In this document: positions 9,001 to 64,000 of the stretch, in pieces
How the letters are laid out: each line of letters starts with the position of its first letter
How positions within the stretch are numbered: position 1 is the stretch's first letter
Position numbers and translations under genes: made by a program
NCBI GenBank assembly: GCA_965240325.2
Contig: OZ251238.1
Location: forward strand, 62,001-126,000
Direction of reading: 5' to 3'
Length of the DNA stretch: 64,000 bases
From: Rebecca billardiae RCC1528
Lineage: Eukaryota > Protista > Haptophyta
The notes under the pieces: model-generated
The model's input: only the letters and a program-made list of their open reading frames with translations
Database searches by the model: none
What the model was told of the DNA's origin: nothing

Positions 9001-9060
9001 CCATCGCCGCCACCGGCAGCCTCGCCGCTGCCACCGCCGTCCCCGCCGCCGTCGCCGCCG
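1..9060 (+). repeat. Coding tandem array A: PAASPLPPPS(PPPS)n subunits punctuated by a block containing PPRAQPF
   Basis: A marker CTAG (in CCCCCTAGCCC) recurs at about 557, 1814, 2507, 3908, 5249, 6290, 7631 and 8528 (spacings 1257, 693, 1401, 1341, 1041, 1341, 897, all multiples of 3). Antisense shadow ORFs 3908..5233 and 6290..7615 translate identically. Confidence 0.9.
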
Positions 9061-23454: not shown

Positions 23455-23574
23455 GCGTGGTCCGGGCGGCGTGCCCGCGCGCGTGCCGCCGCTCCGCGCG
23501 GCACGGCCGCGAGCGTCGTCGAGCGCGCTGATGCCGCGCCGCCGCGTGGCGCCATGGCCGGACCAAGGAAGAGC

Positions 23575-23710
23575 GCCATGAATATTAAATCAATAACTTC
23601 GAAAAATAATAGCCAGACTCTCCGTAGGTCCGGAACGGGTTTACCCGGAGCGATAGATAGCACTACGCTTACGCCGGTACGACGACGCGCTGCTAGCTTA
23701 TTCAAACGCG
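23575..23710 (+). promoter_or_regulatory. AT-enriched island upstream of the SEL1/MYND gene (probable promoter or 3'-end region)
   Basis: Abrupt drop in GC (ATGAATATTAAATCAATAACTTCGAAAAATAATAG) between two GC-rich CDSs. Confidence 0.4.
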
Positions 23711-23772
23711 CCGGGCCAACGGTCGCCTCGCGCGCTCGCTTCACCTCACCTGTTCGTAGTCGCAGCTCGACG

Positions 23773-25022: not shown

Positions 25023-25491
25023 GCGAGGCGGCGCGCCGCGCCCCGAGCTCGACGGCCGGCGCCGATGTGGCCCGCCGCCCGCTCGCAGCGCTGCCCTTGC
25101 AGCGGCAGCTGCTGTGCGCGCCGCGGCCGCAAAAGCCCGCCGCCGCGACTTCCCAACCAAGTTCGGCAAGGTCCAGCCTCAGCCGGCCAGCCGCGCAGGC
25201 CCCGCGCAGCCTGACGCGCTGAGGCTCAGCACGCACCACTGAATCGTTCCCTACGCGTACAGCACCAGTGGCGGCGTCCGCCGCAGCCTGCGCGCGAGAG
25301 TGAGACTGAGATTCTCTCTCTGAGTGACTAGAACTGAGATGAGTGATGAGAATGAGCCCGCTGACGGCAGGGCGGGCCGCGTCGCTTGCCCGCAGCCCCG
25401 CACTGCGGCGTGGCGCGAAGAAGGCCGACGGTCGAAGGCGGTCCGAATAAACGAAAATGCTTAAGTAATGCGCCGCCCGACAAGCAGCAGC

Positions 25492-29486: not shown

Positions 29487-30010
29487 CTACTGCGGCGCTC
29501 GCACGAGCGTGTCGCGCAGCGAGGGCACGCGGTGCGCGTGCACGCGCGGCCCCGCGCGCGCGCCGAGCAGCGCGCGCGGCACGGCGGCGGGCTCGGCGGT
29601 GGCGCCGAGCGGCGGCGGCGGCGCGCGGCGCTGCTGTCCGCCCGGCTTTGGCAGCACCTGCCCGCCCACCGGCACGTCGTAGCGCTCCACCTCGGTGGTG
29701 ATCCTCACCGCCGCGCCCGCCGCGCCCAGGTCGATCGGGTACGCGGCGCGCAGCTCGACCTCGATGCGCGCGCACATGCCGGGCGCGACCGGGCCGCGCG
29801 GGCCCGCGGTGACGAGCACGTCCGCGAGCGGCTGCGCCGCCGTGCGCGCGAGCGCCGCGCTGCGCGCCGGCGGCGGCGGCGGCGCGAGCGGCCCCTCCTC
29901 CGCGTCCGAGTCGTCGCTCAGCAGCGCGGCGGGCGCGGCCGCGAGCGCGGCGAGCGCGGGCGGCGTGGCGGCGGGCTCGGCGGCCGCGGGCGGCGCGGCG
30001 GGCGGCTCGG

Positions 30011-30041
<31 letters not shown>

Positions 30042-37479: not shown

Positions 37480-37575
37480 GCGTTTAATCTTTATTCGGCC
37501 GCTCCGGTTTGAAAGAAATCCGAGAGCCGATTTTTTCAGCAACGTCGTCGTCCCTTTCTTTTTGATCGATGGATA
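37480..37575 (-). promoter_or_regulatory. AT-enriched island between the PUM3 stop and the SPAG17 start
   Basis: Short AT-rich patch with T runs in the 351-bp intergenic gap. Confidence 0.35.
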
Positions 37576-37648
37576 CCGATCGTCTGGCCTCGGCTCTTCT
37601 TCTCGCCCGCACGATGGCGGCCCCGCGCGCGCTCCGCACGCGCCGCCC

Positions 37649-40600: not shown

Positions 40601-40775
40601 CGGCCGCGCCGCCGTCCGCCGCCGCGTCGGCGCCGGCGCCGCCGTGTGCGCCGTCGGCGAAGAGCGCGTGCTTGGTGCGCGACGCGCGGCTGGGGCCGTC
40701 GCCCGGGCCCTTCTTGCCCGAAGGCTTGTCGCGGCCGAAGCGCGTGTCGCGCCGCGCCTGCCTCGCCTTGCCCAT
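37649..40775 (-). CDS. PUM3: Nucleolar Pumilio-family protein PUM3/Puf6 (PUF-like repeats plus CPL domain), 7 exons, about 740 aa
   Basis: Predicted exons 40775-40239, 40018-39825, 39675-39467, 39344-39148, 38998-38876, 38747-38062 and 37925-37649 (2,223 nt). Lys-rich N-terminus; motifs LWETLR, KHDAARVVQACIKHG, LCRSQYGHH, HTPHGATAV, KERKALVRALK, DDTVLLAKSVLSEL and KKDAPTRRAEL. Confidence 0.88.
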
Positions 40776-41159
40776 GCGGCGCTGACGATGCGCGCGGCCC
40801 TGGGCACACGCGTCGGGACGGCTGCAGCAGCACGCGGCCGCCCACGATGCGGCCGGACCGGGCGCGAGGCCGCCGCGCGGCAGTCCGGGCACGCCCGCCC
40901 CCGAGCAAAGAAATACTTTCCGAGCAGTACTAGTACTACTGTGGACGCTCGTTTTAAATTCCCCTTTATAACGGGCTCCGGGTGATCAGACTGGCGGCCG
41001 AAGCCTCCAGCCCTACCCTGGCCAGCCCCCAACCAACCACCACCCTCACCCAACCTCAAACCACTGACCGATACACCGAGTGCCTTGACACCACTCCGCT
41101 GTGGACCCTTCCTATATTTCTTTGCCTGCACCGAGGCAGGGGAGGTGCAGCGCATCAGC
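40776..41159. promoter_or_regulatory. Probable bidirectional promoter between PUM3 and the sulfotransferase
   Basis: Head-to-head genes 384 bp apart. The AT-enriched core contains TTTTAAAT, TTTATAA (~40965) and the palindrome AGTACTAGTACT. Confidence 0.5.
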
Positions 41160-45394: not shown

Positions 45395-45445
45395 TCAGTC
45401 GCCCGAAGAGTCATCGTGCGCAGAGTCGTCGGCCGAGCAGTTGCT

Positions 45446-45479
<34 letters not shown>

Positions 45480-48400
45480 GAGGATGCTTGGAGGTCGAGC
45501 AGCAGCGAGTGCGGACGGGCCGCCTCGCCCTCAGAGCCGCGCTGCGGTGCGCCCTCCGCCGCGCAGCTGCGGCGCGCGGCCGCGATGCACACGGGCGCCG
45601 CGTGCCACCACTCCGCACCCTCCTCCGCCTCCGCACCCTCCGCCTCCGCACCCTCCGCCTCCGCACCCTCCTCCGCCTCCGCACCCTCTGCCTCCGCACC
45701 CTCCGCCTCCGCACCCTCCGCCTCTCCCTCCGGCTGCGGCCGCGGCGCGCGCGGCGCGCGCGCGCGCGCGGCGGGCAGCAGCACGCTGCCCAGCGGCGGC
45801 GCGTCCGGCTCGTCCGCCGCGCACAGCAGCGGCACCGCCAGACTCGCGCAGCCGGCGGACGCGTGCGCGCCGCGCGCGCCGCCGCCGCCGCGCGACAGCC
45901 ACGCGAGCACCGCGCCGTGCAGCGGCTGCGCGCACCCGCCGCGCCGCGCGCGTGGCGCGCAGAGCGCGAGCGGCGGCGCCGCGCAGCCCGGCGCGGCGGG
46001 TGCGCACGGCGCGAGCCGTGCGCCGAGCAGCACCGCGCCGCGCACGCCGAACGCGCAGCGCGCGGCGGCCGCCCGCTCGGCCTCCGCGCCCGCGTGCTGC
46101 TGCGCGCCCGCGAGCTCCCCCGCGTCCGTGCGCAGCAGCGCGAGGCTCAGCTCGTCCGGCCGCACGCCGAGCGCGGCCGCGGCGCGCGCGCGGCTCGCGC
46201 CGAGCAGCGCGTGCGGGCACAGCAGCCGGCCGAGGGCCACGCCGCACACGGCGCCGCCGGACGCGCCTGCGGCGGCGTCGGCGGCGCGCGTGGCCGCGGC
46301 GAGCGCGGCGCCGACGGCGGGCTCGGTGGCCGGCGGCGCCGGCGGCGGCGTCGCGAGCGCGCCGTGCGCGCCGCCCGGCTCGATCAGCGCGCAGCCCGCG
46401 TGCGCGCGGCCGCACAGCTCGGCCACCCACGCGCCCAGCGGCGCGGCGCCGCCCCACTCGCACGGCGCGCGCCACGCGGGCGGGGCGGCGTCGGCGCGGA
46501 CGGCGCGCAGCGCGGCCAGGCCGGCCGCGCACAGCGGCGCGCCGGCCGCCGCCGCGTCCGCCGCGTCCGCCGCCTCGCGCAGCCCGGCGGCGGCGGCGCC
46601 GAGCGCGGCGTCGCGCGCGGCCGCCTCGCGCGCGAGCCAGCGCGCGCTCGGCGCGTCCGCCGCGCGCCCGGCCGCGAGCAGCAGCGGCGCGAGGTCCGGC
46701 TCGGACTCCGCGCCGGGCGCGTGCGCGCCGCCGGCGCCGTCGGGCGCGCGCAGCGCGGCGCGCGCCGCGCGCGAGCGCGCCGCCGCCGCCTCGAGCGCCG
46801 CGCACAGCGCGCGCGCGCGCGAGGCCGCCTCGGCCGCGCCCGGCGCGCCGCCGCCGTCCGCCTCGGCGCCGCCGCCCGCACCCGCCTCGCTCGCCTCCGC
46901 CGCCGCCTCCGCCGCCGCCGCCTCCTCCGCCGCGCCGACCGGCAGCGCGGGCCGCAGGTCGGCGAGGCCGTGCAGCAGCTGCCGCACGCGCTGCCGCGCG
47001 GCCGCGCGCGCGGCCGAGGCTGGCAGCAGCGCCGCGGCGGCGGCGTCGGCATCGTCCGCGCCCGCGGCCGCCTCGGCGGCGGCGCGCGCCCACGCGGCCG
47101 CGTGCCGCAGCGCCGCGGCGCCCGCGCCGCCGCCCGCGCCGGGCCCGGCGGCGGGCTCGGCGGCGGCGCGCGGCGGCAGCACGCCCGCACCCACGAGCGC
47201 CGCATCCGCCGCGGGCCCGACGCACTCGCGCACCAGCCGGCGCAGCGCCGCGCCGTGCTGCTGCGCGCCCGCGCCGTGGGCTGCGCCGCCCCCGCCGTAC
47301 ACGCCGCCGCCCGCCAGCTCGGCGCGCAGCGCGGCCCACGCGCACGCGCCGCCCTCCTCCGCGCCGCCGCCGCCGCCGCCGTCGCCGTGTGCGCGCAGGT
47401 GCGCGCGCGCGGCGCCGAGCGCGGCGCGCAGCTCGGCCGCGCCCCAGCCCTCCACGCCGCCCGCAGCCGCGCCGCGTGTGCGCAGCAGCAGCTGCGCGCG
47501 GCAGCCGCCCGCGGCGTGCAGCCTGCGCGCGCGCCGAGAAGCAAGCAACGGCGCACGCGGCCGGCGCGGCGGGTGTGAGGGCGGGCGGGGGCGGGTGCCG
47601 CCACCGCGGCCGCGCGCGCGGCGGTCGACGCGCGCACGCACACACACGCACACGCGCACACGCACACACGCACACACGCGCACGCACGCACGAACACGCG
47701 CACACGCACACGCGCACACACGCGCACACACACGCACACACACACACACGCACACGCGCACCTGCAGATCTGCACGGCGAGGCGCGCCGCCTGCTCCGAC
47801 GGCGCTGCGCCCAGCCACGCGCCCGCCTCCGCCAGCGCCGCGCGCAGGGCTGCGCCGAGCCCGAGGCTGTGCGGAGGGCACAGGCTGAGCCGCACGCAGC
47901 TGCGCAGCAGGCAGGGCGGCAGCGGGGCCGGGCCGTGCGGCTGCAGTGCGCACAGCAGCAGCAGACGGCTGCCTGGCGCCCACGGGCCTGCGGCGCACGG
48001 CGCACAGCGCACAGCGCACACGGGCGGCGCGGGGGCAGGGCGGGTGGGCGCGCGGACGCGCGCGGTGCGGTGCGGTGTGCGCTGTGCGGTGTGTGGTGTG
48101 CGGTGTGCTGTGTGCTGTGTGTGGTGTGCGGTGTGCGGTGTGTGCTGTGTGCTGTGTGCTGTGTGCTGTGTGGTGCGCGGCTGGGCCCCACCTGCGTCCA
48201 GCTCCGCTGTGAGCGCGCGCAGCCAGGTGGGGGGCGCGCTGTGCGCGTCGAGCAGCAGCGCCCAGCGGTTGGCGCCCTCGCGCGCGCCCCGCACCGCCGC
48301 GCTCGCCGCCTCGAGCGCGCCCGCGCCGCCGCCGAGCCCCAGTACGCTCAGGCTCACGCCGTGCGAACCCGCGGCCGCCGCGACCGCCGCGCACACGTCG

Positions 48401-51269
48401 GCCGCGCCGCCTTCGCCGCCGTCCTCGCCCTGCGCGGGCAGCAGGAGCGCGAGCGGCGCGCCGGCGGGGGCGGCGCGGAGCGCGGCGGCAAGGAGCTCCG
48501 GCGCCGTGCGCGCGCCCAGCGCCGCCGCGAGCGCGCCCGCCGCGCTGCCCTCCTCGCGCGCGCCGCCCGCGCGGCGCGCGTCCGCGCGGCCGCCGAGCGC
48601 TGCGAGCGCGAGCGCGCGCGCGCACTGCAGCGCGTGCGCCGTGGGGTTGAGCGCGCAGCCGAGCAGCAGCGTCGCCCACGCGCTGCCCGCCTCCTCCACG
48701 CACGCGCCGCTCAGGCCGTGCGCCGCCGCCGCCGCCGCGCCGCCGACGCGCACGCGCGGCGGCGGCGCCGCGCCGCCGAGCGCGGCCGCCCAGCGCGCGG
48801 GCGCGGCGCGCGCGCTCTCGCGCAGCGCGCCGCACAGCTCGGGGCGCGCCGCGCCCAGCAGCGCGCGCAGCCGCAGCTCGGCGCGGCGCGCGGCGGCGCG
48901 GCGCGGCGCGCCGAGCGCCGCGCGCACCTCCGGCGGCAGCGCCGGCAGCGCCACCGCCGCCGCCGCCGCGCCCTCGGCGCCGCCTCCGCGCGCGCCCAGC
49001 AGCCACCGCCACTCGGCGGCGGAGGGCGCGGCGCGCGTGCCGCGCAGCGCGCCCAGCGCGACGCCCAGCGCGGCGGTGAGCCGGTGGCGCGGGAGGCAGC
49101 CGAGCGCGGCGTCGCGCGCGGCGGCGCGCAGCGTCGCGCGCGCGAGCGCGCCCGCGCGCTCGGCGCGCGCCGCCGCGCCGCCGTCCGCGTCGGCCGCGCC
49201 GCCGCCGTCCGCGCCGCCGCCGGCCGCGCCGCCGCCGCCGCCGCCGCCGCCGGCCGCCGGCCGCGCGCGCTCGGCGGCCGGCGGCGGCAGCGCGGCGGCG
49301 GCGGCGCGCAGCGTGGCCTCGAGCGCGGGCAGCGCGTGCGCGTACGCGGGGTGCAGCGCGCACAGCGCCGACGCGCCGCCGTGCGCCGCCGCCGCCGCCG
49401 CGGCCACCGCCGCGTACGGCGCGGCCGCCGCGTCGCACGCGTCCGCGCGCGCCTGCGCCGCGCGCGCCTTTGCGGCGACCGCGCGCGCGTCCGCCTGCAG
49501 CCGGCCGAGCGCGGCGAGCAGCGCGGCGTCGTCGAGGAGCGAGGCGCGCGCCGCGCCGGCGGCGGGCTCCGCCTCCGCCCCGCCCGCCGCGTACGCCCCG
49601 TCCCACCCGCCCCACCCGCCGCCGCCCCACCCGCCGCCGCCGTCGGGCGCGAGCGCGTCCGCCGCCGCCAGCCGCTGCAGCATGGCCGCCCGCGCGGTGC
49701 GCACCGAGCCGAGCGCGCACCCCAGCTCGGCGCGCGCAGACGCGCGCGCGGCCGCGAGGCGCGGCGCGTCGGCGCGCAGCGCGAGCGCGAGCAGGTGCGC
49801 CTCGAGCGCGCCGTCGGACAGCGCGCAGTCCACCACCGCCACGCGCGCGCACAGCTCGGCGCACAGCGCGCCCACGCCGCCGCGCGCCGCCGAGCACAGC
49901 AGCAGCCGCGCGCCGGCGGAGGGCGCCAGCCGCGCGCCGCCCGGCCACAGCCGGCCGCGCGGGCGGCACGCGGCGGCGGCGGCGCGCGCGGCGGCGGCGA
50001 GGGCCGCGTCCGCCTCCGCCACGTCGAGCCCGCCGCCGCCCTCGCCCTCCGCGCCGCCGCCCTCCTCCTCCTCCGCGCCGCCCCAGCCCGCGCGCGCGCC
50101 CCCGCCGCCGCCGCCGCGCGGCTCGGGGTGCGCCTCGTCCGCGCCGTGTGCGAGCAGCGGCAGCAGCGCCGCCTCGAGCAGCGGCAGCGCGCAGCGGGGC
50201 AGGCCGTGGGCGCACTCGAGGAGCACCACGCCGCCGTAGCGCAGCGCGGCGGAGACCGCGGCGGCCCACGCGCGCGGCGGCGCCGCGGCGTTGGCGCGCG
50301 TCAGCCGCGCCGCGCCGCCGCCCGCGCCGCCCGCGCCGCCCGCGCCGCCCGCGCCGCCCGCGCCGCCGCGGCCGCGCAGCGCGCCGCCGCCGTCGGCGAG
50401 CGCGGCGGCGAGCCACGCGACGACGGCGCCGCTCGGGTCGAGCAGCAGCGGCGGCCGCTCGGAGCGCGTGGCCACCAGCGCGCACACCGCCGCGCCGCCC
50501 GCGGGCGGCGGCGGCGGCTCGGCGCCCGGCGCGCGCGCGCGCGCGTGCGCGTGCGCACCCGCCGCCTCCGCCTCCGCCGCCGCCGCCGCCTCCTCCGCAC
50601 ACGGCAGCCCGGCCGCCGCCCAGCCGCGCAGCTCGGCGGCGGGCACGCAGCGGCGCACGAGCTCGGCGGGCGTGGGCGGCGGCGGCGGCGGCCCCGCCGC
50701 CGCCGCGCCGCCGCCCGCGCCCTCCTCCGCCCCCTCCGGCGGCCCCTGCGCGCCGCCGAGGGCCGCCCCGCGCAGGCTGTGCGGCACGCCCGCCGCCTCC
50801 AGCGCCGCCTCCGCGCCGCGCACGAGCTCGGCGCGCGCGCGCGCCCGCAGCGGGCCGGCGTGCGCGAGGAGGACGGCGCACGCGAGCGCGTCGCCCGCGA
50901 GCGCGCGCTGCGCGCCCGCGCACGCGCCCGCCGCCGCGATCCACCGCGCGCCGTGCTCGCGCAGCCCGCCGAGCAGCGCGCGCGCGCGCGCCACGCGCGC
51001 GCGCGCGACCTCGGCCGCCGCTCGCTCGCGGTGCGCCGCCGCCACGCGCGCCGCGTAAGCGTCGCGCGCGGCGCGGATGGCGGCGGCGTGGCGCGCGGCG
51101 TCGGCGTGCGCGCGCGCGAGGCCGGCCGACGCGGCCGCCGCCTCCGCCTCGAGCACCGCCGCGCGCGCGCCGCCGCCGCCGCCGCCGCCGATGGCGCCGC
51201 CGACCGAGGCCGCGCGCGCGCGCGCGCCCAACCCCAGCGGGTGCGGCGGCTGCGGCGCACACGCCGGCT

Positions 51270-51303
<34 letters not shown>

Positions 51304-51889
51304 GGCCGCGCCGCCGCCGCCGCCGCCGGGCGCGCGCGCGCGCTCGAGCTCGGAGCGCGCGGTGCGCAGCTGCGCGGAGAGCCGCTCGGCCTCGGCGCGC
51401 GCGCGCTCCGCCCCCGCCTGCGCGCGCGCCAGCTCGTCCAGCTGCGCCGCCGCCGCCGCCTCGCCGCCGCCGAGCGCGCGCTCGCGCGCTCGCAGCGCGC
51501 GGCCGAGCGCGCGCGCGTCTCGGCACGCGCGCGCGAGCGCGTGGCAGCCGCCGACGAGGCGCGCGCGCGCGGCGGCGTGCTCGCGCGCGGCGGCGGCGTA
51601 CGTCGCGTCGAACGCGACGAGCAGCTCGAGCAGCGCGCGCGGCGACGCCGCGCACGCGCTCGCCGGCCCGGCGCGCGCGCACGCGAGCAGGTGCGCGCGC
51701 GCGGCCGCGCCCGCGAGCGCGTCCGCGCGCAGCGCCTCGGCCTCGCGCGCCTCCTCCGCCTCGGCGCCGTCGAAGAGGGAGCGCGCGACCTCGCGCGCCT
51801 CCTCGGAGAGCGCGCCGTCCACGCCGGCGTGCCGCGCCGCGCCGCCGCCGCCCTCGTCGCCCGACGACTCGGACGAGGACCAACCGCCA

Positions 51890-51923
<34 letters not shown>

Positions 51924-54132
51924 ACGCCGCGGCGGCGGCGGCGGCGCCGCCCTTGCGAGCGGCGGCGGCGGCGGCGGCGGTGCGCAGCGGCGCGGCGGCG
52001 AGCGCGGCGGGCGCGGCCTCGCGCGGCGGCGTGGGCTGCTGCGGCTGCGCCTCCGCCGCCATCGCCGCCTCCGCCGCCGCCGCCTCCGCCGCCGCCTCCG
52101 CCGCGCGCTCCCCGAGCGCATCCGCCGCCCTGTCGTCAGCCAGCACGCGCCGCAGCGTGCGGCCGAGCGCGCGCTGGCACAGATGCACCGCCGCCTCGGC
52201 GCGCCAGGGCGGCAGGTGCACGAGCGCGGCGCAGCGGCCGAGCGCGGGCGAGAGCAGCGAGAGCGCCGCGCCCACGCCGCCGCCGCCGCCCTCCTCCTCG
52301 CCCCCCGCCGTGCACAGCGTCAGCACCACGCTCACGTGCGCGCACACTGCGCGCCGCAGCAGCAGCGCGGCGCCGGCCGCGCCGGCGCCGGCCGCGCCCT
52401 CCGAGCCGCCCGCACCCGCGCCGCCGGCCGCGGCGCCGTCGGCGTCCGCGGCGGCGTCGGCGGCGGCGTCGGCGGCGGCCGTGGCTGCTGCTGCCGCCGC
52501 GGCGGCGGCGGCGGCGGCGGCGGCGGTCTGCGCGGCGGACGACGACGCGCGCCGCCCGCCCCCGTCGTGCGCCGCGGCGGCGCGCGCGCCGTGTGCCGCG
52601 GCGCGCGCGGCCCTGGCGTGCGCGGCGCGCTGCCGTGCAGCTGCTGCGTCTCGCCGTCGGCGAGCAGCGGGCCGAGCGCCTCGAGGGCGTGGGGCGGCAG
52701 GGCGTGCGCGCCGGTGAGCAGCAGCGCGGTGCGCTGCCGCCGCGCCGCCGCGTCGCACGCCACCTCCGCCACCGCGCACAGCCACGCGCCCACCGCGCCC
52801 GCCTCTGCGTCGGTGCGGCCGGGCGCGCGCAGCCGCAGCACGCGGCAGCCCGCGTCCGCGGCGGCGAGCCGCGCGAGCGACGCCTTGCCCGAGCACGGCG
52901 GGCCGCAGAGGGCGAGGTGAGAGCCGCCGCCCGGCGCCGTCGGCGTCTGCGCGCACAGCAGCCGGCGCAGCCGCAGCAGCGCGAGCGTCGCGCCGTCATG
53001 CAGCAGCAGCGGGCAGCGCGCGCTCCGCGCGTCGTCGTCCGCGCCGTCCGCCACGCCGCCGCCCGGCGCCGCGCCGCCGCCAAACCCGCCGGCGCTCGCG
53101 CCGGCGCCGCCGGGCGTGGGCGGCAGCGGCGTGGCGGGCAGCTCGGCGAGGCCGGCGCCCAGCTCCGCCCCGCCCTCCGCCGCGCCCTCCGCCTCCGCCG
53201 CCAGCGCCTCCGCCGCCGCGTCAAAGTGCGCGCGCGCCTCGGCCAGCTCCAGCCGTGCGTACGCGCCCCGGGGCACGCCCTCCGCGCCGCCCTGCTCGCC
53301 CGGTGGCAGCAGCGCCTCCTCGAGGGTGGAGCGCGCGGAGAGGGCGGAGACGGTGGAGGCGGAGGAGGCGCGGCCGAGGGAGGGCGGCGGCGGGTGGAGC
53401 AGCGCGAGCGACGCCGCGCGCCGCCGCAGCGGCGAGCCCTCGCGCGCCGCGTGCGAGCGCGCCAGCAGCGGCTGGTGGGAGAGCGCGGGCGGCACGCGCG
53501 CAGAGCAGCCCCCGCCGCTGCCGCCGCCGCACCCGCCGCGCTCGGGCGAGTGCGGCGGCGCGACGGCGAGGTGCGGCGGCGGCGCGGCGGCGGGCGCGGC
53601 GGCGGGTGCGCCGAGTGCCAGCGGCGGCGGCAGCCGCAGGCTGGGCGGCGGCAGCGCGCGCTGCCCTGGGCTGCCGTGCGGCGCGCAGCCGAGCGGGCTC
53701 GCCGCCGCCGAGCCGCCGCCGCCGCCCGAGCCGCGGCTGCGGCGGCGCGGCGGCGACGCGCCGCGCGCGGCGCTGAGCGCGCGGCTGAAGAGCGGCGGCT
53801 CGGCGGCGGCGCCGAGCCAGCCGCGCTCGCACGCGGGCACCGCCGCGCACAGCGCCGCGCAGATCGCCTCCGCCGCGGCCGCTCCCAGCCCCTCGTCGGG
53901 GCCGAGCGGGTCTGCGAGTGTGCGCGCGCCTTCGTGCGCACACAGGCGGCACAGCGCGCCCACCGCGCCGCCGCCCGCCGCGGCGGCCGCGGCGGCGGCG
54001 GCCGCGGCGGTGCCGCCGGGCGTGGGCGGCGGCTGCGCGTGCGCGTGCAGCGCGTGCGCGTCGATCGCGACGCGCAGCGCACACGCCCAGCGCGCGAGGT
54101 CGCGCGGCGCGCACAGCGCCCAGCCCGCGGCC

Positions 54133-54184
<52 letters not shown>

Positions 54185-55455
54185 CGCCGTCGGCGAGCGC
54201 GCGCACCGCGCCGTGCGCCGCCGCCATCGCGCAGCCCAGCGCGTCCGCGAGCTCGGCGCACGCGGGCGGCGCGCGCGCGAGCGCGGCGCGCAGCAGCGCG
54301 CCGCCGAGCGCGCCGAGCGCCGCCTCGGACGGCGCGCCCACGTGCAGCTGCGCAAACGCGGCGGCCAGGCGCGGCGGCAGCGGGCGGCGGCCGGGCTCGG
54401 CGCGCGGCCGCGCGCACGCGAGCACGCGCAGCCGCCGCGCGCGCGCCCACGCCCAGCCCGCGCCGTGCGCGGCCGGGGCCGCGCCGCCGCCGCCCGCCGC
54501 CGCCGCCGCCGCCGCGGCCGCGCGCCAGTGCGCGCTCGCCAGCTCGGCCGGCGGCAGCCACAGGCCGCGCGCGCACAGCAGCTGGCGCAGCGCGGCGTGT
54601 GCGCCGGAGGGCGCGTGCGGCTGCGGCTGCTGCGGCGGCTGCTGCGGCTGCGGCTGCGCGGGCAGGTTGAGGTCGTCGACCAGCAGCACCACCCAGCACG
54701 CACCACCCGCGCCCGCGCCCGCCTCCGCGCCACCCGCACCCCCGGACCCGCCGCCGCCGCGCGCGCGCCGCGCGCCGCGCGCGCGCGCGCCCGGCGGCGG
54801 GCGCGGCAGCAGCTGCGCGGCGCCGTCGCGCGGCGCGCGCGCCGCCGCGCACGCGCGCAGCAGCGCGCACCCCACCGCGCCCGCGCCCGTGCCCGCGCCC
54901 AGCCGCAGCACGCTGCGCGCCGCGCGCGGGCACGCGCGCGCCGCCGCGTGCGCGGCCGCCACCCGCTTCGCTGCGCCGCGCGGCCCGACGAGCAGCGCGG
55001 GGCAGCGCGCGAGGAGCAGCGCGCCGCACAGCCGGCGCACGGCCTCGGTGGCAGCGGTGGGCACGCACAGCGTGCCCGCGCACGCGGCGCGCAGCGCGCC
55101 CGCCTCCGCGTCGCGCAGCGCGCGCGGCGGCGGCGGCGGCGGCGGCGCGCCCGCGCACGGCGCGCCCGGCAGCCACGCCCACGCGCCGCAGCCCGGCTCC
55201 AGCCACGCGCACTCGAGCGGCAGCCCGGGCGGCGGCGCTGCCTCGCGCGGCACGAGCGCGCACAGCTCCGCGCCCAGCCGCGCGCGCGCGCGTGCTGGCA
55301 GCTGGCCGCCCATGCCCCACAGCGCGCACAGCAGCACCCAGCGCGCGCAGAAGGCGGACGCGAGCGCGTGCGCGCGCTCGTGCGCGGCCGCGGCCGCCGC
55401 CGCCTCCGCCTCCGCCTCGTCGTCCGAGCCGCCGCCGTCGCCGCCGCCGAGGGCG

Positions 55456-55488
<33 letters not shown>

Positions 55489-58400
55489 GCGTCGGCGCCG
55501 GCCGGCGGCGCGCGGCCGCGCGCGCCCGCCGCGCCCGCCGCGCCGCGCTGCGACTTGCGCGCGGCTGGGCGCTCGCCTCGCGCACGCTGCGCCCCTCGCG
55601 CGTGCTGCGCGATCAGCGCGCGCAGCCCGGACGAGAGCAGCGCGAGGAAGGTGCGCAGCAGCGCGGGCGGCGCGCACTCTGCGGCGAGCTCGCGCGCGCC
55701 GCCGCCCGCCGCGTGCTCCGCCGCCGCGTCGAGCGCCAGCGCGAGCGCGCGCAGGGCCACGGACGAGGCGTGCATCTGCGCGGGCACCTCAAAGGAGCCG
55801 CCGCCCCCAAGCGCGGCCTCGGCGGCGGAGAGCGCGGCGCGGTCCCCGACCAGCAGCGGCGCGAGCGCGCGCGCGCACGCGGCCTGCAGCGCGCACGGCG
55901 CCCCCGCCGCGCGCGGCCCGCCGCCGCCGCCGCCGCCGCCGCCGTCGAGGTCGGAGGAGCGGCGGCGCGCGCTGCCGCGGCGCGCGCTGCCCTCGCGCGA
56001 GCCGCCGCCAAACCCGCCGACGCCGCCGCCCGCGGCCGCCGCGCCCGCGGCCGCGGCGGCAAAGGCCACGCCGCCGCCACCGCCGCGGCCGCGGCCGCGC
56101 CCCTGCCCGTACGCGCGGCGTGTGCGCACGCCCACCTCGCCCACGTCCGCGCCGACCGCGCACCGAGCGCCGCCCGGCCGCGCGCACACGCCGCCGCCTT
56201 GGCCGCCCTCCGCCTCCGCGTCCGACTGGTCCGACGTGTCGTCCTCGTCCTCCGCCTCCGCCTCGGAGGACGCGGTGGACGGCGCGGAGGAGGAGGAGGC
56301 GGAGGAGGCGGAGGCGGAGCCCCCCGCCAGGTGCCCCGCGTCGGCGGGCCGCGCGCCGCCGCCCGCCGCGCCGGCCGCCGCCGCGCTCGCGCCGCCGGCC
56401 GCGCCGCCGCCGAGCGGCGGCGCGGCCGGCGGCGCGCGCGGCAGCGTCGCGCGCGCGGCGGCGCGCGGCGCGGGCGCGAGCGCGCGCGCCGCGAGCAGCC
56501 GGCAGTAGCGCAGCAGCCGCGCGGCGGGCGGCACCGCTTCCTCCCCCACGTGGCACAGCCCGCACGCCAACAGCGCCGCGGGCGCCGCGTGCGCCGCGCT
56601 GTCGGTCTCGAGGAGCAGCGCCACGGCGCGCGGCACGCGCACGCTGCCGCCGCGCGGGTCGCACAGCAGCTGCCCGCCCCACGGCCACGCGCCCGGCCCC
56701 AGTCCCTCGAGCGAGCGCGCGTCGAGCGAGCCGTCGACGCAGAGCCACCACGGCTGCGGGCGCGCGCGCGCGCCGCCGCGCCGCGCGCGCCGCGCCACCG
56801 CGCCGCCGCGCGCGCCCGCCGCCGCGCTCGGCGTCGGCCGCTCGGCGGCGGCTGCGGTGCGGCGGCGCGTGCGCGCGCCCACAGCCGTGCGCGGCGCGCG
56901 CGCGCCGCCGTGCGCATCCGGCGGCTGCAGGCCGAGCGGGCTGCCGCCGCGCGCGCCGTCGGCGGCGGCGGCGCGCGTGCCGAGCGCGCGGAAGCTAGCG
57001 GCGCCCGCCGCGCCCCCCTCCGCGCCCGCGCCCTCGTCCTCGCCGCCGTCCGCGTCGCTGCCGCTGCCGCCGCCGCTGCCGCCACCGCTGCCGCTGCCGC
57101 CGCCGCTGCCGCCGCCGCTGCCGCTGCCGCCGCCGCTGCCGCCGCCGCTGCCGCTGCCGCTGCCGCTGCCGCCGCCGCTGCCGCTGCCGCTGCCGCCGCC
57201 GCGCGCCGCCTCGTCCGCCTCGCTGGCCGAGTCGGAGCGCTCGGAGCTCGGCGCGTCGGAGCGCTCGGAGCTCGGCGCGTCGGCGGCCGCGGCCGCGCGC
57301 CGCCGCTGCTGCTGCTGCTGCTGCTGCTGCTTTGCCGCTGCGCGCAGCAGCGCGGGCAGCAGGCCCTCATCCCACTCGCCGCTGCCGTCGGCGCGCGCGC
57401 AGCCGAGCCACGCGCCGCCGCCGCCGTCGAGCGCGTGCGCGTCCACTGTCGCGCACGCGCCGCGCGCGCGCCGCCGCGCGCACAGCGCGCCGAGCAGCGT
57501 GCGCCACAGCGCGCTCTTGCCCGAGCGCGGCGGCCCCAGCAGCAGCACGCAGCGGCGCGCGCGCAGCAGCTCGTGCAGCGCCACGCCACAGCCCACCCAC
57601 TCGCGCAGCGGCAGCGGCGCGCACGCGCGGCCCGCGCACGCGCCCTCGAGCGCGCGCGCCACGCGGCCGCACCGCCCGCGCAGCGGCGGCGCGCCGGGTG
57701 CGGGCGCGGGTGCGGGCGGTGCGTGCGGCGGTGCTGGGTGCCGTGGCAGCGGCCGCGGCAGCGGCCGTGGCAGCAGCGCGTCGAGCAGGGCGGCGCACTC
57801 GGCAGCCGCGCACGGCCCTCGGTGCTCGGCCGGCGGCGCGCACCGCTCGAGCGCCTCGCGCAGCGCGGCGCACTCTTCGGCCATCGAATCAGCCGCGCCC
57901 TCGGCGCCGCCGCCCTCGGCGCCGCCGCCCTCGGCGCCGCCGCCCTCCTCGCTGCCCGAGTCGGCGGCGCTGCCGCTGCCGCCGCTGCCGTCGTCCGAGC
58001 AGCCGCCGCCGCCGCCGCCGCCGCCGCCGCTGCTGCTGCTGCTGCTGCTGCTCAGCCCGAGCGAGCGCCCGCCCCGCGCCTCCGCCTCGGCGCCGCGCGC
58101 CGCGCGCCGCCGCCGCGCGCGCGCCGCGCCGAGCGCCGCGCCCGCCTCCCGCGCGAGCGCGGCCAGCAGCGCGCCGCCCAGCGCGCACGCGCCGCCGCCC
58201 GCGGGCGCGCACCCGCCGTGCAGCTCGGCGGCGTGCGCGAGCGCGCAGCACAGCCGGCGGCCGAGCGCCGCGCCGTGCGCGAAGCCGGCCGCGCCCAGCG
58301 CCGCGGCGGCGAGCGCGGCCGCGTCCGGCGCGCGCACGTGCACGGGCCGCAGGTACGCGGCCAGCGAGGGTGGCAGCAGCGCGCGAGCGCACGCGCCGCG

Positions 58401-58507
58401 CCCGCCGCCGGCCGCGGGCAGCGCTGCGGCGGTGGGTGCGGCGCCGTGCGTGTGCGGCAGGAGCGTGAGCACGAGGGCGGCGTGGCGCAGCGGCGCGCCC
58501 TCCGCGC

Positions 58508-58546
<39 letters not shown>

Positions 58547-61227
58547 GCGGCGCGGCGCGCTGCGCGTCGGCGAGCGCGCGCGCGGCGGCGCCGAGCGCGC
58601 CGAGCGCGGCCGGGCCCAGCGCGTGCGCGCCGCACAGCACAGCCCAGCAGCCGCGCGCGCGCGCGCCCGCGACGGCGCGCTCGACGGCGGCCGCGGCGGT
58701 CGCGCCGCCGCAGTGCAGCACGCTCGCCGGCCGGCCGAGCGCCGCGGCGAGCTCGAGCACCGCGGTGCGCTTGCCGCAGCCCGCCGCGCCGCGCAGCGCG
58801 GGGTGCGCGCGCGCGCGCAGCGCGCTCGCGAGCGCGAGCTGCGCGCGGCCGCACTCGGCGCTCGGCAGCGCGCGGCCCGCGCCGAGCGGCGTGGGCTCCC
58901 AGCGGTGCGGCCCCTCCCACGCGCCGAGCGCGCACGTCACGCCGCCGCCCGGCGCGAGCTCGCACCGCAGCGTCGCCGCCCACTCGAAGCAGCGCGGCCC
59001 GCTCGCCGCGCACGCGCGCGCCAGCACCGCGGCCGCGTCGCGCAGCGCCACGAGCTCGGCGCCGGCCGCGCGCACGGCGGCGCGCGCGGCGCGGTCGGTG
59101 GTGGTGGGCGCGTGCGGCGCGGGCGCGGTGCTGTCGCGCGCGTGCGGGGCGAGCGGCGCGGCGGGCCCGGCGCCGAGCGCGCCGAGCGCCGCGCCCACGC
59201 GCGCGCCCACCGCGCCTACCGCTCCGCGCGCCTCCGGCCCACCGCCCGCGCTGCGCGCGCCCAGCGCCGCGCCCAGCTGCGCGGTGGCGGCGGCGCGCAG
59301 CGCCAGCGCCCAGAGCTGCGCGGGCGGAGGGGGGCGGCGCGCGCAGCCGGGCGCGGCGCGCGCGGCGGCGTGGAGCGCGGCCGCGCCGCGGCCCTCGGGC
59401 GCGCCGAGCAGCGCGGCGGCCGCGCCCACCGCGGCCGGCGCCGCCTCGCGCAGCCCCGCGCGCAGCGCCGCGTCGAGCGCGCCCAGCCACGCCCACGGCG
59501 GCTGCGCGGCGCGCGCGCGCACGGGCGTGGCGAGGGGCAGCAGCTCGGCGTCGTGCGTGCGCGCGCAGAGCACGAGCCAGCGCGCGCCCTCGGCGTCGGC
59601 ACCGCCGGCGGCCTCGTCGGCGGCCTCGCCCGCGCCCGCCGCCTCCGCGCCGCGGCCGCGCGCGGCGGCCGCGTGCGCCGCGGCCGCGTCGGGCTGCGCG
59701 GCGACGCCGAGCGCCGCGACCCCGCCCCACAGCGAGCTGAGCGCCCACGGCCCGAGCTCGGCGGGGGGGCGGGTCGAGGCGCTCGCGCCCAGCTCGAGGA
59801 GCTGCGCGTCGTCCAGCGCGTGCAGCCGCGCCCACTGCCCGCGGCACGCCGCCGCGTGCGCGCCCAGCGCCGCGCGCGCGCCGTCGAGCGCGCGCGCCGC
59901 TCGCTCGAGCCGCTCGCGCGCGGCCGGCAGCGCGAGCGCGCCGCCGCACGTGGGCGCGCGCGCGAGCGCGGCGCAGAGCGAGCGCAGCTCGGCGTCCGCG
60001 GCGGCGAAGGGCGCGCGCGCGGCGGGCGGCACCGCCGCGCCGCCCGCCGCGCCGCCGCCGCCGCGCCGCCGCGCGACCCCCGCCGCGCCGCCGCCGCCGC
60101 CGCCGCCGCCGCCTTGGCCGCCGCCTTCTCCGAGCATGGGCGCGAGCGCGGCCGCGTGGCTCTGCGCGTGCCGCCACGCCTCGAGGAGGGCGCGCAGGCG
60201 TTCGAGGGCGGCGAGGAGCGCGGCGCGCTCGCGCGCGTGCGGGCGCACGCCCGGCGCGCCGCCGAGCGCGTGCGCCGCCGCGAGCGCCTCGCCCGTCACG
60301 CCGAGCGCCGCGCCGAGGCCGCAGACGCGCGGCGGGCCGCCGCACCCGCCGCCGCCGGCGCGCCGGCGCGCGCGCCAGCCGCCGCCGCCGCCCGCGGCGT
60401 CGCCGCCCTCGGCGGCGTCGGCGTCGTCGTCGGCGTCGTCGTCGTCGGCGTACGCGACGCGCAGCGGGCACGCCTCCGCGCCCTCGCGCAGCGCGCGCAG
60501 CTCCGCCTCCGCGCCCGCCTCCGCGCGCGCGCGCGCCACGAGGGCGCGCACGGCGCCCTCGGCGGCGCCGAGCGCGGCCGCGCCGCCGCCGCGCAGCAGC
60601 CGGCCGAGCGGCGTGGCGGCGGGCGGCGGGCCGCGCGGCGGGCCGGGGAGGGCGAGCGGCGCGAGCGGCCCCGCGCGCAGCGCGGCCCAGTGCCGCGGGC
60701 GCAGCGCGTCCGCGCGCAGCTCGCCGAGCGCGGCGAGCGCCGCCGCCGCGTGCGCGAGCTCCGCGCCCAGCGCGCGCGCCGCGCCCCCCTCGCGCGCGCG
60801 CGCCGGCAGCGCGCGCAGCGCCGCGCCCGCCTCGTCCGCCTCGGCGCGCGCCTTGCGCGGGACGAGGCCGCCCCACGGCTGCGCGCGCAGCGCCGCGAGC
60901 CGCTCCGCCGCGCCGCCGAGCTGCGCCCACGCCGCGCGCTGCGCCGCCGCGTCCGCCGCGAGCGCGCGCACGGACGCGGCCGCCGCGCGCAGCGCGGCCG
61001 CGCCGCCCTCGCCGCCGACGGCGCCGCCGCCGACGCCGCCGCCGTCGGCGTCGGCGTCGTCGGCGAAGGGCGCGGGCGCGGCGAGCTCGGCCGCCGCCTC
61101 CTGCGCCGCCGCGAGCGCCGCGCCGAGCGCGTCCGCCGCGCCCTCGAGCGTGCCGAGCGCGCCGAGCGCCGCGGCGGGCGTGCGCGCGCGCGGCGGCGCG
61201 GCGCGCGCGGCGCCGCCGGCCGACGGC

Positions 61228-61268
<41 letters not shown>

Positions 61269-62521
61269 GCCGCCGTCGGCGGCGGGCTCGGCGTGCGGCG
61301 GGTGCGGCGCGTACGCGTCCGGCCGCGCGGCGGGCCACCACTCCGCGCAGAACACCGCGCACAGCTCGCACAGCGCCGCCGCGCGCGCGCCGTGCGCCGC
61401 GCGCAGCCGCTGCCAGCCCGCGGCCAGCGCGCGCGCCTCCGCCTCCGCGCCGCCAAGCAGGGCGCGCGCGGCGGCGCGCGCGGCCGCGGCGGCGTCGTCC
61501 GCGGCGGCGGCGGCGGCGGGCGGCTCGGCGGGCGGCGGGTGGTGCGGCTGCGCCGCGCGCGCGTGCGCCAGCGCCGCCGCCGCCGCGGGCAGGCTCTCCT
61601 CCAGCCAGCGCCGCGCGCGGGCGCGCGCGGCGCGCGCGGCGCGCAGCGCGCGCAGCAGCGCCGCCCACGGCGCGCCCAGCGCGGCCGCAGCGCCGCCCGC
61701 GCCGCCGTCGGCGGCGGCGGCGGAGGCGGCGGCGGCGGCGGGCGCGGCGCGGCCCGCCGCGGCGGCGGCGAGCTCGGGCGGCAGCGCCGGCGGCGGCGCG
61801 CACAGCGCGGCCAGCGCCGCCGCCGCGCCGCCGCCGCCGAGCGCCTCGGCCTCGCGCGCGGCCGCGTCGGCGACGGCGCGCGCGCGCGCGGCCGCGAGCG
61901 CGCGCGCGCCGCCGCCGAGCGCGGCGGCCCACGCGGCGGCGCGCGCGGCGGCGGCGGCGTCCGCGCCCGCCGTGTCGAGCGCGAGCACGCCGAGCCGCTG
62001 CGCGCCCGCCGCCGCCGCCGCCGCGCGCGCGCCGCCGCCGCCGGTTCGGCCGTCGAGCGCGCGGCGCGTGCCGCCGAGTGCGCGCAGCGCGGCCGCGCGC
62101 GCCGCGAGCGCGGCATCGGCCGCCGCGTCGTCCGCGCCCGCCGCCTCGGCGTGGGCGAGGGCGGCGGCGGCGGCGGCGGCGGCGGGCGGCGCGCGCCACA
62201 GCGGCGCGCGCGCCGCCGCCCACGCCGCCGCCGCGCCCTCCGCGCGCCGCACCGCCGCGTCGGCCGCGCCGAGCGCCGCGGCGAGCGCGCCCGCCGCGTC
62301 CGCGCACGCGGCCGCGAGCGCGCCGCCGTGCTCGGCGGCGGCGCCGCGCGCGCCGAGCGCGGCGGCGGCGGCGCGCGGGCCGCGGAGCACCCACCAGTGC
62401 CGCGCCGGCCGCGCGCCGCCGTCCGCGCGCTCGCACTCGCACGCCGCCGCGCACGCCGCGCGCACCGCCGCCCAGAGCTGCGCGCGCACACACGGCGCGC
62501 TCGGCCACAGCGCCGCGCACA

Positions 62522-62555
<34 letters not shown>

Positions 62556-63807
62556 CTCGGAGACGCGGAGGCGGACGCGCGCGCGCGGCGCGGCGTGGGC
62601 CTGCGGCGGCAGCGCGGCCGGGCTGCCCCGCCCGCTCCCGCCGCCGCCGGCAGCAGCGCCGCCACCACCGCCGCCGCCCGGCGCCGCCGCCCACGCGCGC
62701 AGCGCGCGCGCCGCGCGCCTCGCGAGCGCCGCGGCTAAGCGCGCGTCCGCAGCCGCGGCGTAGGCGGCGGCGCCCGCCACGTTGGCGGCGGCGACGCGCT
62801 CGACGGCGGCGCGCGCGGCGGCGGCGGCGGCGCGCGCGGTGGCGGCGGCGCACGCCCCGCCCCGCCCCTCGCCGCCCTCCTCCTCCGCCGCCGCCGCCGC
62901 CTCCTCCTCCCCGCCGCCGCCGCCGCCGCCCTCCGCGTCCGCGCGCGCGTCCGCTCCGTCGATGGCCGCCAGCGCGCGCGCCAGCGCCGCCTCTGCGCCG
63001 AGCAGCTCGCGAGAGGCGGCGGCGTACGCGACGAGCGCGCGGCGGAGGCGCGCGGCGCACGCGCGCAGCGCCGCCGCGTCCGTCGGGCCCGCGCCCGCCG
63101 CCGCGCGCACCGCCGCGTGCGCCGCCGCCGCGTGCGGGCGCAGGTGGCGGCGCAGCGGCGGCGGCACGCGCGCGACGGCGGCCGCGCGCGCGTCGAGCGC
63201 GCCGCCGAGCTCGGCGGCGGCGGCGGCGAGCGGCGCCCACTCGGCGGCGGCGGCGGCGAGGGCGCGCGGCACGCCGCCCTCCGGCGCGCCCGCCCCCGCC
63301 GGCGCGTACCCCAGCCGCCCCAGCGCCTCCGCCTCGGCGGGCAGCGCCAGCAGCAGCGGCGGCAGCGCGGGGCACAGCCGCAGCCGCGCGCGGCCGCCGC
63401 CGCCGCGCGCGCGCGCCGCCGAGCCGCCACCGCCACCGTCCGCGCGCGCCCCCGCCGCCGCCTCGGCGGCGGCGCCGTCGGCAGTGCCGCCGGCCGCCGC
63501 GCCGGCGCTGCGCGCCGGCGGCGCGAGCTCGAGCACGGCGAGCGCCCGGCCGCGCGGCGGCGCCGCCAGCTCGCGCGCGGCCGCGGCCGCCCACGCGCCC
63601 ACGAGCGCCGCCGCGCGCGCGGCCGCGGCGGCGCGCAGCGCGGCCGCGTCGGCGAGCACGGCGCGCGCGGCGGCGTGCGCGCCGCACGACTCGCCGAGCG
63701 CGGCGCGCACGAGGCGCGCGCCCAGCTCGCCGCGCGCGCCGAGCGCGCGCGCGCGGCACACCGCCGCCGCCACCGGCGGCCAGCCGCGCGCGCCGCCCAC
63801 CGCGGCC

Positions 63808-63845
<38 letters not shown>

Positions 63846-64000
63846 CTCGGCGGCGGCGCCGCGGCCGAGCGCGGCGCGCGCGCGCCCGACCTCGGCGGCG
63901 GCGGCGCGGAGGAGCGCGCCCTCCGCGTCGGGCAGCGCGGCGCGCACGGCCGGGCGGCCGAGCGCGCCCGCCGCGCGCGCCAGCGCGCGCGCGCGCGCGC
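45395..64000 (-). CDS. Highly divergent dynein heavy chain-like protein, 5'-truncated (about 6,050 aa in window), with an apparent frameshift near 52630 and two introns
   Basis: Dynein landmarks occur in order: linker FEWAATLR; AAA1 GAAGCGKRT and LPPSLAAYLRPVHVRAPD; AAA2 GPPRSGKS, GEWDEGLL and WLCVDGSLD; AAA3 GPRGAAKR and LVDDLNLP; AAA4 HLALCGPPCSGKASLARLAA; stalk LLGGLREHGARW; AAA5 RPPLLLDPSG; AAA6 WALLLDAH; and GGVYGG. Introns 48191-47988 and 47761-47523; TGA at 45395. Confidence 0.85.
45446..45730 (-). repeat. Coding acidic repeats at the dynein-like C-terminus: (GAC)n poly-Asp and a 15/18-bp EAE(E)GA repeat
   Basis: About 11 GTC triplets at 45446-45478 and CTCCGCACCCTCCGC-like units at about 45610-45730. 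Confidence 0.8.
47630..48175. repeat. (CA)n and (TG)n-type microsatellites in the two introns of the dynein-like gene
   Basis: CA-rich run at 47630-47760 and GTGCTGT/GTGCG repeats at 48060-48175. Confidence 0.85.
57055..57330 (-). repeat. Coding Gly-Ser repeat and poly-Gln inserted within AAA2 of the dynein-like protein
   Basis: About 48 aa of GGGSGSGS repeats, a duplicated SSERSD and Q9, lying between GEWDEGLL and WLCVDG. Confidence 0.85.

Follow-up and report, generated by a model that had tools for sequence, protein, structure and literature searches.

The stretch of DNA analysed here (hereafter the window: 64,000 nucleotides of contig OZ251238.1 from the haptophyte Rebecca billardiae RCC1528) carries on its minus strand, from position 45395 up to its right-hand edge, part of a dynein heavy chain-like gene, whose AAA1 module the initial annotation had predicted to be catalytically dead. 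The window is extremely rich in guanine and cytosine (GC), with a GC content of 0.85-0.90 across the dynein-like gene and of 87% in the minus-strand frame 52332-64000, and below position 45500 the content drops from about 0.85 to 0.6. Reading frames thousands of codons long lie open in all six frames of the window and, because 87% GC leaves all six open, an open frame is no evidence of coding here; the case was therefore built on homology, codon phase and residue patterns. The open reading frame (ORF) at 52332-63947 (minus strand) is 3871 residues long, its frame runs on, open, to the window edge, and its product consists of 31% Ala, 16.5% Gly, 10% Arg, 10% Leu and 8% Pro. Searches were performed with single ORF pieces and trees were built from the uninterrupted ORF only. 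The gene, its coding stretch and the motifs on which the argument turns are listed below.

45395-64000, minus strand: dynein heavy chain-like gene, partial, its 5' part lying beyond the window edge; the frame is still open at 63948-63998, and dynein motifs can be traced in order as far as a stop at 45395.
52581-64000, minus strand: single uninterrupted coding stretch comprising tail, linker and AAA1 up to the AAA4 Walker B box; codon-phase GC of 0.90/0.75/0.97 throughout, Pfam matches in order.
52400-52580, minus strand: low-complexity zone of the (GCC)n type in which the coding phase moves by 2 nucleotides (codon phase and direct sequence reading).
60468-60932, minus strand: linker, Pfam DHC_N2 match over residues 1006-1160 (28.3 bits, E 1e-6, below the 31.9 cut-off; 21 bits to cytoplasmic dynein 1).
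58764-58790, minus strand: AAA1 Walker A, GAAGCGKRT (canonical GPAGTGKTE), Lys kept and the Mg-binding Thr changed to Arg (phmmer, MAFFT, profile).
58617-58652, minus strand: AAA1 Walker B box, GCWAVLCGAHAL (canonical GAWGCFDEFNRL), Asp changed to Cys and Glu to Gly (phmmer, MAFFT, profile).
58455-58469, minus strand: AAA1 sensor I strand, LTLLP (canonical TMNP), Asn changed to Leu, Thr and Pro kept (MAFFT, and position ahead of the next block).
58323-58379, minus strand: conserved AAA1 block, LLPPSLAAYLRPVHVRAPD (canonical ELPxNLKALFRPVAMxxPD; phmmer, and profile at 15 bits with high posterior probability).
58164-58184, minus strand: sensor II region, ALGGALL (canonical FGLRALK), Arg changed to Gly (MAFFT column and spacing).
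56559-56585, minus strand: AAA2 arginine-finger segment, APAALLACG (canonical SPATVSRCG), Arg changed to Ala (phmmer, MAFFT).

That the frame belongs to a dynein follows from several kinds of comparison. Pfam AAA_6 matches at 46.2 bits (cut-off 25.2, E 4e-12), above its gathering score and over profile positions 20-89 of 327 only, and is accompanied by weaker DHC_N2, AAA_5, AAA_7 and AAA matches in the correct order, several of them below their own cut-offs, and by a weak AAA_9 match in the downstream piece. Searching the PDB dyneins with phmmer returned many solved structures at E 6e-10 to 1e-6, and a feature search of the ESM Atlas returned dynein clusters only. A custom hidden Markov model (HMM; the profile of the list) built from 30 canonical dyneins recognises the stretch from Walker A to Walker B at E 1.7e-13 and the downstream GR..LP..L...RP....PD block at E 4e-7. 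The dynein order of linker, six AAA modules, stalk and C-terminal domain is present, the stalk helices, the AAA6 strand and the C-terminal motifs having been read directly. AAA3-AAA4 gave marginal dynein matches only against the PDB (E 0.006), amid linker-peptide noise, and the C-terminal exon gave no significant match to dynein C-termini, where short motifs were recognised by eye only. Judged from its sequence, the minus-strand frame is that of a real dynein heavy chain homologue.

ATP (adenosine triphosphate) hydrolysis at AAA1 drives the dynein power stroke and is needed for motility. The prediction that AAA1 is dead was based on five motifs, all of which we found by direct reading of the DNA at the positions listed above, on the minus strand and in the frame of ORF 52332-63947; their pairing with canonical counterparts was then examined by phmmer, by a 39-sequence MAFFT alignment and by the custom HMM. 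Walker A had been described as kept, and this holds for the GxxGxGK pattern, which is intact, but not for the Thr or Ser that follows the Lys, which here is Arg (GKRT). Both Walker B acids are lost, with GCWAVLCGAHAL pairing with GAWGCFDEFNRL by all three methods. A Walker B motif hidden elsewhere in AAA1 was looked for and ruled out, as no acidic residue follows any hydrophobic strand of the module; from Walker A to sensor I, Asp and Glu occur in 'LADAQ' and 'AEGAP' only. The sensor I Asn is lost as well, LTLLP standing against TMNP both in the MAFFT alignment and by its position before the GR..LP..L...RP..V..PD block; LTLLP is followed by a 19-residue insertion. Sensor II is the weakest motif assignment, the HMM giving no significant alignment there: by the MAFFT alignment, and by the canonical distance from PD (about 47 residues), the Arg position falls on residue 1924, a Gly, and since residues 1905-1932 contain no Arg at all, the sensor II Arg is missing in any register. 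Finally, the AAA2 arginine finger is lost, APAALLACG pairing with SPATVSRCG by phmmer and MAFFT. Of the residue set of motile dyneins, then, the gene has the Walker A Lys only, and the remaining six have been substituted: both acids of Walker B, the Asn of sensor I, the Arg of sensor II, the finger Arg and the Thr of Walker A. The alignments thus support a predicted AAA1 that is devoid of every residue known to be needed for hydrolysis except the Walker A Lys.

The remainder of the ring and the stalk comprise the following features.

57513-57545, minus strand: AAA2 Walker A, LLLGPPRSGKS, in canonical form (Pfam, phmmer, MAFFT).
56778-57329, minus strand: low-complexity insertions within AAA2, poly-Q, Ser/Asp-rich and (GGS)n, at residues 2207-2390.
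56718-56750, minus strand: AAA2 Walker B-like strand, WWLCVDGSLDA (canonical WIxxDGxxDA; phmmer).
54963-54995, minus strand: AAA3 Walker A, LLVGPRGAAKR, Lys kept, last Gly changed to Ala and Thr to Arg (Pfam, MAFFT).
54660-54692, minus strand: AAA3 Walker B, VVLLVDDLNLP, with Asp-Asp instead of Asp-Glu (MAFFT).
52878-52916, minus strand: AAA4 Walker A, LALCGPPCSGKAS, Lys kept (GKAS; Pfam, MAFFT).
52698-52727, minus strand: AAA4 Walker B-like strand, ALLLTGAHAL, acidic residue lost.
51142-51351, minus strand: stalk tip, about 55 Gly/Ala/Pro low-complexity residues in place of the microtubule-binding domain of about 125 residues (direct reading).
49660-49860, minus strand: AAA5, weak Pfam AAA_9 match (19.6 bits, below cut-off).
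48241-48270, minus strand: AAA6 strand, NRWALLLDAH, followed by CA/TG-rich introns and more exons (direct reading).

AAA2 thus has a canonical-looking site of its own (GPPRSGKS and VDGSLDA). Both stalk helices are kept, and at the stalk tip no Pfam MT match to the microtubule-binding domain was obtained, the low-complexity residues alone lying between the two helices. The AAA6 strand we take to correspond to the canonical GxWVxLQNCH motif. Just beyond it, at 47700-48200 (minus strand), the translation passes through CA-rich and then TG-rich runs (HTAHSTQHT..., CVCVCV...) that lie between conserved AAA6 blocks and fit CA/TG-rich introns. The Walker B boxes of AAA1 (58617-58652) and AAA4 (52698-52727) both read GAHAL (LCGAHALGPAALGALG and LTGAHALPPHALEALG), in registers that differ relative to the canonical acids; GC pressure may have produced this common string convergently (Asn to His, Gln to His), or a short stretch may have been copied by gene conversion.

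With a composition this extreme, GC pressure itself is a candidate cause of the catalytic losses. Across the 193 columns between linker and AAA4 that are conserved in at least 85% of the 30 canonical dyneins, the window gene keeps 95. Residues with adenine- and thymine-rich codons are mostly gone, the columns kept being 2 of 15 for Phe, 1 of 8 for Asn, 0 of 7 for Tyr and 3 of 9 for Lys. Arg, Asp and Glu, in contrast, have GC-rich codons, and conserved Arg and Glu columns are otherwise kept at about 74% (14 of 19 and 8 of 11), while the lost ones include the Walker B Glu, the sensor II Arg and the arginine finger. Composition therefore does not account for the catalytic losses, and we rejected GC pressure as their cause. 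The three conserved Lys columns still occupied by Lys correspond to the P-loops of AAA1, AAA2 and AAA3. Over its 3871 residues the ORF has only seven Lys, of which four belong to the P-loops of AAA1 to AAA4, and only two Asn, one of them in the AAA3 box DDLNLP. Of all modules AAA1 has kept least, 43% of its 72 conserved columns, a figure equal to that of the fish DNHD1 AAA1, compared with 57-68% for linker, AAA3 and AAA4. Kept P-loop lysines together with lost hydrolysis residues fit a nucleotide-binding, non-hydrolysing module. To this extent the pseudo-ATPase proposed by the initial annotation stands, with the amendment that the Walker A Thr has gone too.

We consider it probable, though by no means assured, that we are dealing with a selection-maintained, extremely diverged ('orphan') dynein heavy chain gene, the product of which cannot work as a motor. 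The gene looks maintained instead of decayed on the following grounds. The codon-phase GC pattern holds across 11.6 kilobases (kb), compared with about 0.6 GC in nearby non-coding DNA, and runs on, in shifted phase, through the downstream exons; more than 17 kb of exonic sequence shows it strongly and evenly. At least 29 insertions of at least 10 residues and seven deletions of at least 3 have left all homology blocks from linker to AAA4 in a single frame. Further downstream, ahead of the stop at 45395, the remainder of AAA4 can still be recognised, as can both stalk helices, AAA5, the AAA6 strand and motifs of the C-terminus.

Several observations weigh against this assignment. The absence of stop codons carries no information at 87% GC, and many of the insertions consist of triplet repeats, whose very mechanism preserves the frame without any selection. 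The first 1270 residues of the ORF contain no Met, the 5' end lying beyond the window. The coding phase changes once, at 52400-52580, with no obvious GT-AG intron: the only GT..AG pairs in this zone span 19 or 69 nucleotides, neither of which is 2 modulo 3. The 69-nucleotide pair, considered as an intron, was rejected, as its removal would also delete a conserved block; the shift may stem from an intron that went unrecognised or has unusual ends, from an error of one base in the assembly, or from a genuine frameshift. An exhaustive HMMER search with AAA1-AAA2 found no orthologue among 1.84 billion representative proteins. Lastly, the nucleotide holding proposed further on is read from the retained lysines alone.

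Some of these observations would suit a decaying pseudogene, that is, a former dynein (possibly the cytoplasmic dynein 1 of the lineage, or a duplicate) that has drifted under strong GC-biased substitution and looks intact because stops cannot arise in 87% GC. To the six open frames, the phase change and the missing relatives may be added that half of the strongly conserved dynein positions are altered, that low-complexity expansions are plentiful and that the gene sits on a tree branch of 4.6-5.0 changes per site. We nevertheless judge decay unlikely. It would have to leave codon-phase GC strong, uniform and far above that of the flanking non-coding DNA over all exons, and all linker-to-AAA4 homology blocks in a single frame. 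Neutral drift would not spare four of seven lysines exactly at the four P-loops, nor one of two Asn in the AAA3 box. Finally, the 51% retention of conserved columns approximates that of fish DNHD1 (55%), which belongs to a family with shown function in mammals.

DNHD1 brings us to the question of descent. A word-index protein search with residues 1640-1880 gave no match, and the HMMER search mentioned above returned 185 matches at E <=0.001, the best at 70 bits and 33% identity. Best scorers on the AAA1 core are dyneins that have a degenerate AAA1 themselves, headed by the environmental fragment P0008 (56 bits, 37% identity), with Walker A GPAATGKGS and Walker B GAWAVLQEANCL. The contig of P0008 (L001 1504-2639; L002 9-476; 64-66% GC) encodes a half-degenerate AAA1, its next exons keeping sensor I (SLNP) and sensor II (DWGLR). 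Another environmental dynein, of about 4000 residues in two gene calls (L003 484-12470), has LSQANG as AAA1 Walker B and keeps Pfam MT, AAA_9 and Dynein_C. Vertebrate DNHD1 is over-represented among the matches and, where canonical dyneins reach 10-25 bits on the AAA1 core, it reaches 30-37. Beyond AAA1, the top local matches are cytoplasmic dynein 1 sequences from Pythium, Salpingoeca, a fungus and Plasmodium, and DNHD1 ranks 13th to 39th of 40 in most segments; its similarity exceeds that of other classes in the AAA1 core only, not along the whole motor.

Phylogenetic placement was attempted with three trees, the first two of which cover linker to AAA4; the window gene has a long branch and a deviant composition. 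Over 1351 columns under LG+G4 the gene is sister to cytoplasmic dynein 1 (support 91) and outside the side of the tree that holds axonemal dyneins and DNHD1 (99). With 25 rows and the LG+C20 mixture it attaches at a node adjoining cytoplasmic dynein 1, again outside axonemal dyneins plus DNHD1 (100). The third tree, from the 482 columns of AAA1-AAA2 only, pairs it with P0052, an orphan dynein of Gymnodinium (97), so the cytoplasmic dynein 1 placement is unstable. In none of the three does the gene fall in with DNHD1. P0052 (a Gymnodinium smaydae transcript of 4157 amino acids) keeps Walker B, sensor II and the Arg finger; 40 of its 49 altered conserved positions are also altered in the window gene (about 24 expected).

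The gene would, on one account, be a true orthologue or early-branching relative of animal DNHD1 (class 11 of Kollmar), with a dead AAA1 inherited from the common ancestor. Besides the scores on the AAA1 core, this account has in its favour that the approximately unbiased (AU) test leaves a clade with DNHD1 unrejected (p 0.42, LG+G4), that relaxed positions overlap (45-49 of 71-76) and that GKRT is common to the window gene and P0094 and P0016, sequences of the DNHD1-like group. The relaxed-position sets overlap above chance with P0052 and P0135 as well as with DNHD1; sites critical to the motor, if relaxed convergently, would account for this. Within DNHD1 itself the position behind the Walker A Lys is taken by T, M, R, K, Q or S, and we rejected GKRT as a trait inherited in common. 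Identical derived residues number 7-9 with DNHD1 and 5-10 with unrelated orphans, being mostly Phe to Leu. The linker-to-AAA4 trees and the ranking outside AAA1 speak against kinship, and the DNHD1 class is reported from metazoans only (PMC5100056). Descent from a DNHD1 ancestor is accordingly, in our estimate, improbable. As to class, the window gene would be termed an 'orphan', its suggested relationship to DNHD1 being unsupported. The likeness is most likely convergent, with the same motor-critical positions relaxed after loss of motility; of the two options that the initial annotation had offered, convergence is the likelier by trees and derived residues, and is not proven as the AU test keeps the DNHD1 clade.

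That the protein is a still-working ATPase or motor, by way of non-canonical catalytic residues or an AAA3-driven cycle, is highly improbable: four P-loop lysines and an acidic pair in AAA3 (DD) are kept, but dynein motility needs AAA1 hydrolysis and AAA1 has no acid behind a hydrophobic strand (its only Asp and Glu between Walker A and sensor I being those of 'LADAQ' and 'AEGAP'), AAA3 has a degenerate Walker A of its own (GPRGAAKR), AAA4 has lost its Walker B and there is no microtubule-binding domain.

Elsewhere in the window, positions 25-20009 are occupied by a degenerate tandem repeat of the (GCC)n type, about 20 kb long, with periods of 9, 12, 21 and 201, 83-88% GC and a constant GC skew of -0.42. 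Three neighbouring ORFs have Pfam matches.

23554-25242, plus strand: ORF with Sel1 repeats (98 bits).
29487-32261, minus strand: ORF matching Pfam 'Flagellar-associated PapD-like' (32.7 bits).
37536-40892, minus strand: ORF with a CPL/NUC119 domain (24.7 bits).

If the window gene is indeed a maintained, non-motor dynein heavy chain, its product would be expected to fold into a dynein-like AAA+ ring. Nucleotide might be held structurally at up to four P-loops, with no hydrolysis at AAA1, and the stalk, without its microtubule-binding domain, would not bind microtubules. Lacking both activities, the protein would play a static part, as a scaffold or as a regulatory partner that, for instance, pairs with other dynein chains or holds them; such a role has already been proposed for animal DNAHX and DNHD1. 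More tentatively, and with slightly less than even confidence, we propose that a protist lineage independently evolved, and through selection maintains, a nucleotide-holding, 'dynein-shaped' scaffold, devoid of motor ATPase and microtubule-binding domain and retaining ring, linker, stalk helices and four P-loop lysines, with a separate, non-animal origin, possibly from a cytoplasmic-type dynein. Recognition of non-motile heavy chains is very recent (DNAHX in 2025, and DNHD1 upon its reassessment after infertility genetics), and they are reported from animals. Should our proposal be true, the protist case would be more degenerate than either, and the retirement of a dynein into a static AAA+ scaffold would be recurrent. 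In addition, GC pressure would have acted as a natural mutagenesis screen, in which the few remaining Lys and Asn mark the residues still needed and provide a direct, testable list of sites for a non-motor role.

The wider family offers several systems for comparison. Kollmar (2016) distinguished 17 dynein classes and 75 orphans from scattered protists, with DNHD1 as a metazoan-specific class and one class without the typical microtubule-binding site, and by its own statement did not analyse the ATP sites (PMC5100056). Whether DNHD1 is a 'ghost gene' is debated in the consensus nomenclature paper (PMC8754002). Chai et al. (2025) described DNAHX as a non-motile dynein of sea urchin sperm with a degenerate AAA1 that still holds ATP, a cryogenic electron microscopy structure showing AAA1 ATP-bound with the Walker A Thr changed to Val; they report DNHD1 to be without Walker B residues and DNAHX to be absent from protists (bioRxiv 10.1101/2025.01.18.633724).

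Like the window gene, DNHD1 has the full-length heavy chain architecture with many disordered insertions, an AAA1 without the Walker B catalytic residues and sensor I, a non-canonical residue after the Walker A Lys, and the same 43% of conserved AAA1 columns. It differs in that two of the three aligned full-length DNHD1 sequences keep the AAA2 Arg finger, which the window gene does not, in that linker-to-AAA4 trees do not group the two, and in its restriction to metazoans; the window gene for its part is without the microtubule-binding domain and contains 31% Ala at 87% GC, which sets it apart from DNHD1. DNAHX, compared by description only, shares the degenerate AAA1 (with changes at the Walker A Thr and at both sensors), the many insertions and impaired microtubule binding; the proposal for it is that ATP is held but not hydrolysed and that the protein partners other dyneins. 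Unlike the window gene it keeps Walker B and a modified microtubule-binding domain, and it derives from the outer-arm alpha chain and is marked by an insertion in the AAA4 small domain; in the linker-to-AAA4 trees, in the set of which no DNAHX sequence was identified, the window gene falls outside the axonemal clade.

The orphan and aberrant protist classes of Kollmar (2016) resemble the window gene in being taxon-restricted and long-branched with altered motor domains, and class 12 does so in being without the typical microtubule-binding site (PMC5100056), but class 12 has lost even the coiled coil, of which the window gene retains the two stalk helices. To cytoplasmic dynein 1 the gene shows its best local scores, in linker, AAA2, AAA3 and AAA5, and its highest identity (25% over 1351 columns), and the two are sisters or neighbours in both linker-to-AAA4 trees. 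No tail similarity to cytoplasmic dynein 1 was detectable, and the window gene differs from it in having lost the AAA1 catalytic residues (bar the Walker A Lys) and the microtubule-binding domain. A haptophyte dynein with a fully dead AAA1 did not turn up in the literature searched. Non-motile dyneins as such are already published, with DNHD1 and DNAHX as examples; what is new here is a protist member in which loss of the AAA1 hydrolysis residues goes together with loss of the microtubule-binding domain.

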